From Selaginella moellendorffii (taxonomy: Eukaryota; Plantae; Lycopodiophyta): a stretch of DNA of 64,000 nt. The translations under genes and the position numbers were made by a program. The notes under the pieces were generated by a model. The model did not search any database. It saw only the letters and a list, made by a program, of their open reading frames with translations, and was not told where the DNA came from. Location of the stretch: NCBI RefSeq assembly GCF_000143415.4, contig NW_003314333.1, forward strand, positions 186,001 to 250,000. Direction: 5' to 3'. Below are positions 32,171 to 36,399 of this stretch, in pieces. Position 1 is the stretch's first letter, and every line of letters starts with the position of its first letter.

Positions 32171-33683
32171 CTAAGATGGCAGATGGCAGTCTTCTAGATT
32201 AGCGTGGGACGCGATGAGGTCCTCTGTGTAGGCCCATAGCTCTTTGCCCAGCTCCATGTCGCTGGCATACTTGCTGCCTGAGGTTTCCTGGCAGTCTGCA
32301 AAGTATTTTCCGGAAATGCCCTCGACATCTGGGTGTGCCGCCACGTAGCATGTTGTAGCTGCTCCTTGTTCAATCGTCTTCAAGAATGGTTCAATCCACG
32401 AAAATGCCACTGGAACGGGGCAAAGATCAGAATCAATCCAGATGGAATATTCAGGTAAGCTTTCTCACAGCCTGCTGGTTCAGCAAATTTCTCAACGAAG
32501 CTGCTGTTGAATACTCCAGGGTGCAACGCGTTCACGGAGATGTTCACTCCTTGCTCCTGGAGAACGTTCAGACCAGAGGAGCAAAAACAAAGTAAACAGG
32601 ACCAACCTCGAGTCTACGTGCCAGTTCCTTGGCAAACAATATGTTGGCAAGTTTGGTCTGTGCATAAACCGTGGACAGTCCATGAATGCTGCAAATTCAT
32701 TGTAATGTGTAAGTTTTCTTTATAACCATACCATACTATACCTCTGCAAAACAGGGACTGCGAACATCCAACTTTTTCTGTGAAGATTCTTAAAATTAAT
32801 TCCCCGAGCACTCTCGTGTTGGCTGGAAGCAACAACGACAATTCTGCCTCGGTTGCCGGATTGCGTTGCAGTCTCCTCTATCAAGTCGAGCAGTGAGTGA
32901 GTGAGAACGAAATGGCCAACGTGATTCACTGCAAATGTCATCTCCAGGCCATCCTCTGACAGGACGAACTGGCTTGAAGCGATTCCTGCATTGTTACTTC
33001 AGACATAACTTTGTCAACCATGAGCTTTAATTTGTGTGTATGAAGATACTTACATGAGTATGTGAAGTGGCAGGCCCAGAGCTTTGAACTTAGCCACGAA
33101 GTTTCGCACAGAGTACATCGACCCGAGATTGAGATGGAGCACGGTGACCTGTGCATTGGGTGTTTGCTCCAAAATCTTGAGTTTTGCTGCGTGTGCAGCC
33201 TTAAGGTTCTCGGAGGCAATGACGACATGAGCACCTCTTCTTGCGAGCACTCTAGATGTTTCGAATCCAATCCCAGCGCTACCGCCTGTACATGGAGGAA
33301 AGGTATGGTGTCGATGCCGAAACCGATCAATTCCCAGACCTGTGATGAGAACAACTTTGGAATCAAGGGAGATGCCATCCATGACTTCCTCTGCAGTCGA
33401 TTTCGCGCGGCTCCTTGGGCTCTGTTCAACCTTGGGGGAGACAAGGCTCTGGAGCTCCTCTGTATAGCATTCATTCATTTTGCTGTTCGACCATACCCAT
33501 GAATCTAGAACAGCACAACTGCTTACTCAGTGATCCGAGAAGGGCCTCTTGAGGCGGAGCTGCCCGTGCCACAACCTTGGATCTCGCACGTTTGCTGCAT
33601 TTCCTGCTACTTCTGGGCTTCGCTGTTGGTGCAGCTGATGCAACTGGTAACTGGAGCTGGAGTGATGCAAAACGGGTTGCCAT
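32171..33683 (-). CDS. Plastid-targeted short-chain dehydrogenase/reductase, TIC32/RDH12-like
   Basis: Transit peptide (MATRFASLQLQLPV...VVARA); STAEEV, TGGSAGIG, NNAG, FAVNHVGHF, YAQTKLANILF, LHPG, QGAATTCYVA; exons join in frame. Confidence 0.9.
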
Positions 33684-34135
33684 TTGTTCCAATACGCCAC
33701 AGACTCCTACATGGTAACTCCTTAGCACACTCACCATTCATTAGTAACGGGACCACTGGTCCGTGGGTGGCTGGGAGGGATGGGTCACCTTGTCCTTTTG
33801 TTTTTCACGTGAATGAAGGAATTCAAGGGCTGTTAGGGACTGCAGATCTTGGGAGATCGCCATCATGACAATGTTTTCGTGCCTTATGGCGTATATCTGG
33901 CCATTTACCTCGGTGGAACGGAGGAGAGCTTCAAGTTCAAGGAGTGTAATACATTCTAAACACCATGTATCATTATTTTATTCGCTCTGAGCCAAAAGCA
34001 TCCTCGCTGTCTTGCTACATTCTGCCGTTCTTTGCTCGCCTTGCTGTCTGATAGCGTGGCAAGTTAGGATGTAGGGTTATGTTACGTAGGAGACACTTCG
34101 TAGAACAATTCTAAACACAGAGAGGAGAATAATGA

Positions 34136-34969
34136 CTAGTTAGAACTATTAGCTAGAGCTCTCTCTCCTTCGAACAATCTCTTGTGGACTTTAGCAAACA
34201 AAGATGGCTGCGGAGTGCAACTGTTGTCAGTCGTCTTGAAGTTGTCAAAATCCAAGCCGACTTTAGCAGCAGCAAGCCGCAGCTCGGGGACAATGGACTT
34301 GGGGAGGCTTGAACTCCGTGTGTAGACAACAGCCCCACCATAGCCGTCCCATGCATCGTTGGACCCGGTGTAGTACACGAAAATGTAGTCGTCCGGTTGC
34401 TTGTTGAGCCGCGCGGAGACGATGAACCTGCGCAAGAGCCCCCAATCAATCCATTAATTGCTCATGAAGGATTCGCAGCTATGCTGGCAATCGCGCACCG
34501 GACCCACGCACACGGAAGCTTTCCTTATAAGATTCATGGCGGTTGTTGGACGTTTGCTCACCAATCTTCTCTGTAATTGAGGTACTCGTTGTCATGATTG
34601 GAGAGGACTCCCGGGCGTTTGGGATTCTTCTGCACAAAATTTTGTGTTGCGTCGCGTGTGATGAAGCCGCCGTCGGGGGTGGTCACCCTCCACGTCAATT
34701 TTCCGGTGAGCTTGTTGGGGCTGGCCGAGAACTCATGGACTTGGCAATCGTAGAGATCGAACAAGGGATTGAGACCGCTGGTAATATACCATGTGCCTGT
34801 GAAGTCTTGGGTGTTGAACTTTTCCACCAAAGCGCAGTCTGGTACCGGGTAGGTGCCGTCGTTGGCACTTTGAGGGATGCACTTTTTTTTGCTCAGGAGG
34901 CATGTGTTGAATTCCTCTACGACCTTGTTCTGGAAAATGTCTCCACATCTGACCTATATTCGGAAACAA

Positions 34970-35004
<35 letters not shown>

Positions 35005-35514
35005 CAGAAACAGAGTGAAAAACTTGATCCCAGAAAGTCTATAAAATCAAATAATACTTGGCACTTCAAGTCTCCTGGACTGCAAGTTTCCAGACAAACT
35101 AAATTGGCAGCGCATGAAGGATCTCCCACGCATCGAACCAGCTCAGATCTGAAGAACATGCGATCAGCTGGATTCACAAGAAACAACGAATCCCAACAAA
35201 TGAGGAGGTGGAGCACAACAGCACCTGCATCCACCCAAAAGACATTTCCATGTTTTTTGAGCGGTCTCGATGTCCAGAGCCACAGCTTGGTTTGCTGGGT
35301 GCAAGAGCAAACACGTTCCCAGGATCAAGCCCCATGCATTTACTTTGAATCCCGGCCCGGTACTTCTTGTTGCTACATTCTCCACTCTTCGGATTCGTAC
35401 AAGCCGGTGCGGAGCCGTGGTACTGGCAATCTGCTCCTTCTTTACCTGCACGCCATAGAACATCTTGCAACTCTTCTCCTTCAAGGCCCATCCTACGGCC
35501 TTGCAGTGATACAT
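34136..35514 (-). CDS. VDE: Violaxanthin de-epoxidase-like lipocalin, atypical (no Glu-rich tail); start 35514 or 35463
   Basis: Bipartite lumenal-type presequence ending AVA; Cys-rich domain (CLLGGCRSELVRC...[11 protein letters not shown]); lipocalin [44 protein letters not shown]. Confidence 0.9.
34972..35000. repeat. (GA)n microsatellite in a VDE intron
   Basis: Direct read of the GAGAGA run. Confidence 0.9.
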
Positions 35515-35845
35515 TTCAAGAAGCCTCCAAACAAACAAGGGACTGATCGTGAAACACCCGAGGTGGGGGGGCGTCGACACTGATCTTCCCCCTTCTGTAG
35601 GCAGCTCGAACCATGTCCTTTTTCTCAACATGTTGCTTTTGTGGGCCTTCTCAATCTGAGGCCTGGGACATTCCACGCCGCCAAGATTCCAGGCAAAAAC
35701 GCACGTTTCTAGAATTGACACACACAGCTTGGAGGACGCGTGGGATGCCGTTACTTTTACGGAAAAGAAAACGAAATCCTATTGCGCTTGACACGTAATT
35801 GCGCCAGCTTACTGCTCCACCTACCGGCAACGAGTGTGTCAAAAG

Positions 35846-36325
35846 TCCCAAGGACAAACCGTACGGAACGCCGTAAAAAAGATATCTTCTGGAAGTATGG
35901 CACATCGGCCAGTGGAAACCTTTGGTGCACCAGGCCGTCTTGAACAAACATATAGGCCATGCTAAAGATGGTGATGCCCAGGCCCTGCAATTCGAAACTA
36001 CATCCTATTACTTACTGCTCAAAAGCACAAACCAGGAAGGAGTCCGTGGTGGGAGAATTCGCAAGACATGAGAGCTATAGCGGGGACTGCGTTCATTGAG
36101 CTCGAATGGACCTTGGCGATGAGACTGTTGTAGAGAGGCTTGTGGTAATTAACTGTTGGAAATTTGTGTGTGCGTTACCTTGTGCATGCTCGACAAGCAA
36201 GAGTGCCATGGCGCTTTGTGTACCCATCTAGCCCAAAACTCCATACCGAGAAATAGCACAGTTGCACCTAATGCGAAAGACACCGTGCCAAGGATTTCCA
36301 GAGCAGGCAGTTCACTGCTGCCTTT
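35846..36325 (-). pseudogene. BCH: Beta-carotene 3-hydroxylase (non-heme di-iron, BCH/CHY-b) pseudogene, 5'-truncated
   Basis: Manual translation: LGMEFWARWVHKAPWHSCLSSMHK | SHRQGPFELN(frameshift)NAVPAIALMSCEFSHHGLLPGLCF*A | GLGITIFSMAYMFVQDGLVHQRFPLADVPYFQKI...FYGVPYGLSLG; TGA at 36019-36021; His boxes deleted or mutated; introns retained. Confidence 0.9.
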
Positions 36326-36399
36326 CTGGACATAGTTAAAGATTTCTCTTTTGTGATCAAGTCTATGTGTGTCAAAAACATATTATGGCATGCCAAGAA

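Follow-up and report, generated by a model that had tools for sequence, protein, structure and literature searches.

We asked whether a violaxanthin de-epoxidase (VDE) gene of Selaginella moellendorffii that ends before most of its Glu-rich C-terminal domain, and that reads Glu at the position of the catalytic Asp177, still encodes a working enzyme, and of what kind that enzyme would be. The gene lies in a 64,000-nucleotide stretch of contig NW_003314333.1 (positions 186,001 to 250,000 of the forward strand), referred to here as the window, whose sequence is identical to scaffold GL377637.1 at about 220 kb; we call this place locus A. The gene consists of four exons on the minus strand (35631-34136) separated by introns that are all GT..AG, and the RefSeq protein XP_002986217.2 (P0381, 393 aa), annotated simply as VDE, is built from exactly these four exons and ends at the same stop. 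Exons were searched individually, full-length comparisons were made with P0381, and codon counts were summed exon by exon. No second VDE copy was found anywhere in the window.

All features described here are on the minus strand. Exon 1 (35225-35631) encodes a presequence and the start of the Cys-rich domain; in the presequence, a segment rich in S/T, a hydrophobic stretch that may direct the protein to the lumen, and an AxA motif (cleavage-type AVA/LD) are visible. It contains both the RefSeq start codon (35631-35629) and a Met common to all paralogs (MF..., 35463-35461). The allele of this gene (L003) does not conserve the far-upstream RefSeq start, its frame being different there, so translation more likely begins at the conserved Met at 35463. 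A Trp codon, TGG, occupies the position of Arabidopsis and spinach C7 at 35248-35250. Exon 2 (35058-35148) continues the Cys-rich domain with C21, C27, C33, C37 and C46, with two residues deleted between C37 and C46 compared to canonical VDE. Exon 3 (34562-34953) completes this domain (C50, C65 and C72) and encodes the first half of the lipocalin barrel, including D98, D114, D117, Q119, H121, R138 and H168; it ends in the REDW motif, with an Asn codon (AAT, 34576-34578) at the H174 position and a Glu codon (GAA, 34567-34569) at the D177 position. Exon 4 (34136-34427) encodes the second half of the barrel (W179, Y198, D206, Y214 and C249) and 26 further residues before the TAG at 34138-34136. 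An AATAAA at 33977-33982, about 155 nt past the stop, may serve as the polyadenylation signal.

Membership of the VDE family was established with the Pfam PF07137 profile for the VDE lipocalin domain, which matched exon 3 (E=4.1e-49) and exon 4 (E=2.8e-23), with exon 2 just under the cut-off; exons 2-4 jointly span profile positions 12-242. Exons 3 and 4 align to the lipocalin domain of Arabidopsis VDE (PDB 3CQN) at about 60% identity, with only single-residue indels, and at this identity to a solved structure the fold is not in doubt. The ten conserved N-terminal cysteines and the C118-C249 pair are all kept, and only the nonconserved C7 is replaced. Literature on VDE assigns pH sensing to H121, Y214, D98, D117, H168 and D206, dimerization to D114 and R138, ascorbate binding to D114, Q119 and Y198, and carotenoid binding to W179, F123, F155 and Q153 (PMC13181403). 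The pH-switch and dimerization residues are all kept in the locus A protein, as are the catalytic Tyr198 and the substrate-contact Trp179. T112 is replaced by Leu, a change that is tolerated according to the same review (PMC13181403). Of the residues given a function in the literature, all but D177 are kept.

The preliminary description of this DNA had reported that the protein stops with no Glu-rich exon downstream, and both the frame scan and the RefSeq model agree with it. The protein ends 26 residues past the last lipocalin cysteine, whereas the full Glu-rich domain of plant VDE is ~100 residues long. These 26 residues, two of them Glu, share an EGE motif with the canonical C-terminal domain and are homologous to its beginning; of the roughly 100 residues of that domain, about 74 are missing. 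Between the stop and the start of the next gene (33737), no acidic frame was found in any of the frames, the maximum acidic fraction in any 30-aa window being 0.2, and a six-frame scan of the entire window found no Glu-rich frame downstream on the minus strand. It had also been raised that transcripts might splice to an unseen acidic exon. The short C-terminus would then be an artifact of annotation or reading, with true transcripts splicing within exon 4 to a distant acidic exon. We found no support for this other than a weak GT at 34147-34146 (ATA/GTTCTA) right before the stop, and we consider it extremely improbable: the window holds no Glu-rich frame downstream on this strand, the coding sequence of the next gene (SDR; adh_short, 408 aa; 32171-33737) begins 398 bp past the VDE stop, the canonical gene has no intron at the corresponding point, all seven sequenced copies of the tail-less family described below have their stop codon at the corresponding nucleotide, and the RefSeq models of its four loci terminate at this same stop.

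Comparison with the canonical gene indicates how the tail was lost. The tail-bearing canonical VDE of S. moellendorffii (P0007, 438 aa) is encoded at 839 kb of scaffold GL377637.1 (L001), 618 kb from locus A, and a single last exon codes for its residues 280-438, tail included. Since the canonical tail sits in the same last exon, we rejected loss of an exon as the cause; instead, a premature stop inside this exon in the ancestor of the family cut some 70-75 residues from the Glu-rich C-terminal domain. Sensitive tblastn searches with the canonical Selaginella and Diphasiastrum tails against ~800 nt past the stop at loci A and D (window, L003, L007 and L008) returned only chance matches to a tail remnant, and the deleted sequence is therefore gone or unrecognizable. 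The locus A C-terminus is a further 3-4 residues shorter than that of its sisters owing to an in-frame 9-12-nt deletion right before the stop. Reportedly, 71 C-terminal residues can be removed from VDE without loss of activity. The literature is conflicting on the Glu-rich tail, which one review terms "essential" (PMC13181403).

The tail-less gene is not alone in its genome. With the 393-aa P0381 as query, a sister cluster was retrieved at 88% identity, and its ten members led to six further places in the assembly. Shared neighbors group these places and the window into four loci, with two haplotypes each where both were found: locus A (the window, L002, and its allele L003, both with VDE, SDR, U-box and PPR genes), locus B (L004 and L005), locus C (L006), and locus D (L007 and L008). 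The sister copies XP_002987036.2, XP_002985534.2, XP_002990454.2, XP_002987881.2 and EFJ11875.1 are 81-92% identical to the locus A protein, with the same stop site and exon structure, and most lie directly downstream of a carotene hydroxylase gene (BCH). Tail loss, Trp at C7 (C7W), Asn at H174 (H174N), an extra linker Cys (PDC) and the two-residue deletion between C37 and C46 are common to all tail-less copies. The sister copies differ from the locus A protein in having Asp177 (codon GAC), 3-4 more C-terminal residues, and two or three presequence repeat units. The extra Cys, we note, brings the count back to 13 cysteines after C7W in all tail-less copies.

The preliminary description had reported its unusual features for one paralog. 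Of these, only the change of Asp177 to Glu (D177E) is confined to locus A; tail loss, C7W and H174N proved to be shared by all four loci. The motif is REDW in the window, KEDW in the allele L003 and KDDW in the other copies, so that D177E corresponds to a single GAC-to-GAA step present in both locus A haplotypes. These comparisons show that the truncated VDE gene spread to four loci, usually beside a carotene hydroxylase gene, and that locus A later lost its hydroxylase partner and changed Asp177 to Glu in both haplotypes. Among 5.8 billion clusters no protein of 60%-88% identity was found, and the tail-less family has so far been seen in S. moellendorffii alone; a limited literature search found no description of the family or of its Glu177 copy. 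The locus A gene is a variant within a known enzyme family, not a novel kind of system.

To judge how unusual the individual changes are, we drew on the 224 VDE-family proteins that could be aligned over the Cys-rich domain, at position 177 and at the last cysteine. The median tail length was 96 residues, and tails of <45 residues occurred only in the tail-less family, two conifer paralogs and a handful of divergent representatives whose origin is unknown. Asp occupied position 177 in 221 of the 224 proteins; the three with Glu comprised the locus A protein and a pair from a single divergent Logan cluster, and in a wider set beyond the 224 a partial Araucaria paralog also had Glu177. The locus A codon 34569-34567 aligns to Arabidopsis D177 (3CQN chain residue 101 is mature residue 177). 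The alignment to 3CQN thus bears out the earlier statements that YLNYREDW stands in place of YLHYQDDW, with GAA at 34567-34569, and that the first Asp of QDDW is the catalytic D177 of Arabidopsis VDE. Whether Asp-to-Glu changes might be common among such enzymes had been left open there; we find D177E to be rare (3/224), and the other three tail-less loci of S. moellendorffii keep Asp. D177 is thought to donate a proton to the epoxide, and its mutation inactivates Arabidopsis VDE (both from the review PMC13181403).

The remaining changes were rejected as meaningful. The reported replacement of the first N-terminal Cys by Trp is real, KTWKC taking the place of KTC(A/S)C, but C7 was variable in our survey; it is the only free cysteine of spinach VDE, its replacement by Ser (C7S) leaves the enzyme fully active, with activity no lower than that of the wild type, and algae do not conserve it (PMC4412432). 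H174N was present in 16 proteins of the 224-protein survey, including the full-tail VDEs of Lupinus, pea, Erythranthe and Perilla (P0375, P0406, P0416, P0436 and others), and we regard it as ordinary variation. Because it occurs in canonical full-tail angiosperm VDEs, this histidine is less conserved than the older mutagenesis literature suggests. H124S was likewise set aside, as H124 is variable and canonical Selaginella VDE has Thr there. Of the changes listed, only tail loss and D177E are judged to carry weight. Two 326-aa Logan proteins that had been considered as candidates were discarded as intron-retaining angiosperm transcripts.

We placed the family by a maximum-likelihood tree of 43 proteins (LG+C20), with no verified VDL sequence among them. 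The tail-less copies formed a clade (100/100) on a long stem, with 1.21 changes per column compared to 0.52 for canonical Selaginella VDE, and locus A was sister to the other three loci. The clade was nested in a 100/99 clade of bryophyte, lycophyte, fern and seed-plant VDEs that also held the unassigned representatives P0018, P0019 and P0030. The tree does not settle the sister group of the family, and the AU test does not reject its grouping with the canonical Selaginella protein (p=0.27). In detail, the locus A protein resembles canonical VDE (Arabidopsis NPQ1/VDE, PDB 3CQN/3CQR; P0007) in its Cys-rich plus lipocalin architecture, with 58-60% identity, in its intron positions where these were compared (split Trp179 codon), and in its disulfide cysteines, pH-switch and ascorbate-contact residues, Y198 and W179. 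Besides the truncated Glu-rich domain, it differs from canonical VDE in Glu177, Trp at the dispensable C7, the extra linker Cys, the two residues deleted between C37 and C46, an insertion of six residues at the N-terminus of the mature protein, and the long stem branch.

Two other groups of proteins share parts of this combination. Chromalveolate VDL1 and VDL2 also have Glu at the D177 position and keep Y198, and their Glu-rich tail is absent or replaced (PMC13181403, PMC2483416); Glu at 177 is the natural state in both VDL and VDR, and VDL often lacks the acidic tail (PMC13181403). The diatom enzyme PtVDL1 converts violaxanthin to neoxanthin without ascorbate and has about 20% activity at neutral pH (PMC7056318). 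VDL proteins differ, however, in their enlarged lipocalin domain (PMC2483416), in their ~20% identity to plant VDE, and in being known from chromalveolates only. The locus A protein thus has the Glu177 and the non-acidic or absent C-terminal domain of a VDL but not the enlarged lipocalin domain. The gene is a recent derivative of plant VDE, and any VDL likeness would be convergent. The second group comprises conifer short-tail VDE paralogs from Cryptomeria (XP_059072759.1, P0011), Taxus (KI387_016046, P0155) and Araucaria (A0A0D6QU20, P0203), which are independent duplicates with a non-Cys residue (Tyr) at C7 and tails of 37-53 residues (37-43 in Cryptomeria and Taxus). The Araucaria fragment combines its short tail with Glu177 and so represents a second, independent pairing of the two changes. 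Unlike the Selaginella genes, the conifer paralogs stem from a separate duplication within conifers, show milder tail shortening, and have no known BCH linkage.

We further examined the genes next to VDE. Directly upstream at locus A lies a BCH remnant (35844-36376), of which only positions 287-996 of the 1117-nt locus D gene align, at 77% identity and with 102 gap columns. The first about 286 nt are missing, one His of the iron-binding HDGLVH motif reads Gln, and both haplotypes (window and L003) are in the same state. Loci B and D, by contrast, have an intact BCH partner. At locus C (L006), BCH is likewise only partial. A new observation, not made in the preliminary description, is that D177E is restricted to the locus whose BCH partner is dead. 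The SDR gene that follows VDE is present only at locus A and its allele. Loci B and D lack it, and BCH-VDE-SDR is therefore no conserved module.

Rates of substitution were used to assess whether the VDE gene is maintained. Between locus A and the other loci, dS was 0.14-0.19, dN was 0.030-0.043, and dN/dS was 0.17-0.26, and comparisons among the other loci fell in the same range. Intron divergence was 0.13-0.17 and thus equal to dS, which therefore reflects the neutral rate. These values show purifying selection on all tail-less copies, and the locus A gene looks maintained by it as well. The branch that separates locus A from the rest carries about 14 synonymous changes against about 11 codons with a replacement, once four final events around the in-frame deletion at the C-terminus are discounted as alignment artifacts. 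In both haplotypes, exons 2-4 and the mature part of exon 1 have undisturbed reading frames and splice sites, and the splice sites of all other copies are intact too. The neighboring BCH, which decayed heavily over the same period, serves as an internal control and argues that VDE has been kept by selection.

A few features call for caution. The two locus A haplotypes differ by 2 synonymous and 6 nonsynonymous changes and a 3-nt indel, while the synonymous-to-nonsynonymous counts for loci B and D are 5:3 and 8:5, respectively. This hints at a recent relaxation at locus A, but the contrast is not significant (Fisher p=0.11). The indel is a deletion in the window haplotype that removes one Pro (PVPDC, 34836-34838 region), which is present in L003 and in all paralogs. 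The presequence also varies: its repeat, an S/T-rich unit ASTTxPxxLVRxV...STGP in exon 1 (window 35300-35463; about 5700-6300 in L004-L008), is present once at locus A, twice at loci B and C, and two or three times at locus D, making the locus A presequence shorter than those of the sister copies.

Taken together, these data suggest as the best reading that locus A encodes a selectively maintained, working lumenal enzyme of the VDE type with altered regulation and a modified general acid, and we think this probably, though by no means certainly, right. The protein would be imported into the thylakoid lumen and fold into a disulfide-locked Cys-rich domain and a lipocalin barrel. It would still sense low pH via H121/Y214, D98, D117, H168 and D206 and dimerize via D114/R138, and it would bind an epoxy-xanthophyll and ascorbate (D114, Q119 and Y198), with Glu177 protonating the epoxide. 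As the protein is tail-less, its pH-dependent membrane association and oligomerization should differ from those of canonical VDE, and the longer side chain of Glu177 probably alters rate or substrate preference without abolishing activity. Within this reading, the change in membrane association and oligomerization would probably be a trait of the whole family, brought by tail loss, and the modified general acid, held with the same measured confidence, one of locus A. The preliminary description had proposed altered pH regulation or neofunctionalization. The part of this that concerns membrane binding and oligomerization is a fair inference, as tail loss was kept in genes with a dN/dS of about 0.2, but C7W and H174N, which it had also invoked, carry little weight. 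D177E may represent neofunctionalization, tuned activity or incipient decay, among which the sequence does not decide.

In favor of a working enzyme, VDL and VDR normally have Glu at 177, and VDL1 shows activity on violaxanthin (PMC13181403, PMC7056318). Against it stand the near invariance of D177 (221/224), the report that its mutation is inactivating (PMC13181403), the 2 synonymous versus 6 nonsynonymous haplotype differences, the shorter presequence, and the dead partner BCH. The same observations would fit early decay, in which the family is functional but locus A was first deprived of its BCH partner, next replaced its catalytic Asp, and is now drifting as an inactive or nearly inactive gene that is still free of disabling mutations. 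D177E at this locus and its allele only, next to a BCH that is a pseudogene in both haplotypes, would be expected from such a course, and so would haplotype differences that are mainly nonsynonymous, with a 3-nt deletion in the window haplotype, a shortened presequence with an upstream frame that is not conserved between haplotypes, and the loss of a residue reported as essential (PMC13181403). We nevertheless consider decay unlikely, since long-term dN/dS at locus A is about 0.2, like that of the other copies, the branch leading to it carries ~14 synonymous changes against ~11 replaced codons, and VDE frames and splice sites have stayed intact in both haplotypes beside a BCH with 102 gap columns. 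All other functional residues are kept, and Asp to Glu is the most conservative change, leading to the native state of active VDL enzymes.

It is also conceivable, though we rate this lower again and regard it as rather improbable, that the gene has undergone a convergent, VDL-like neofunctionalization. The enzyme would open the epoxide without reductive elimination, or act on another epoxy-carotenoid, and would be largely independent of ascorbate and active over a wider pH range, like diatom VDL1. Glu177 together with the lack of an acidic tail is what separates VDL from VDE (PMC13181403, PMC2483416), PtVDL1 has no need of ascorbate and keeps ~20% activity at neutral pH (PMC7056318), the stem of the tail-less family is long (1.21 versus 0.52 changes per column), and the short-tail Araucaria duplicate P0203 has arrived at Glu177 too. 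However, the ascorbate contacts D114, Q119 and Y198 are kept, as is the whole set of pH-switch residues, and the lipocalin domain is not enlarged, unlike that of VDL (PMC2483416). D177E is moreover absent from the three sister loci and so is not the adaptation of the family. To our knowledge, S. moellendorffii has no unusual pigment. That a land plant convergently re-created the VDL recipe, and that the locus A copy is an ascorbate-independent or broad-pH epoxy-carotenoid isomerase or de-epoxidase instead of a xanthophyll-cycle switch, is a more specific proposal that we find slightly more doubtful still. If it were true, then together with the Araucaria Glu177 paralog it would mean that tail loss and D177E are functionally coupled and recur when VDE is recruited to a new role.

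For the maintained VDE-type enzyme that we favor, the genome itself offers a natural experiment, as it contains canonical VDE, tail-less Asp177 copies that purifying selection has kept, and one tail-less Glu177 copy. These three kinds of VDE, natural and coevolved, could separate the effect of the tail from that of D177E. VDE is an enzyme of photoprotection whose regulation is a target for better crop photosynthesis, and natural variants with a different pH response are of practical interest. As a minor feature of the locus, intron 2 of the VDE gene contains a (CT)n microsatellite at about 34970-35005 of the window (minus strand).
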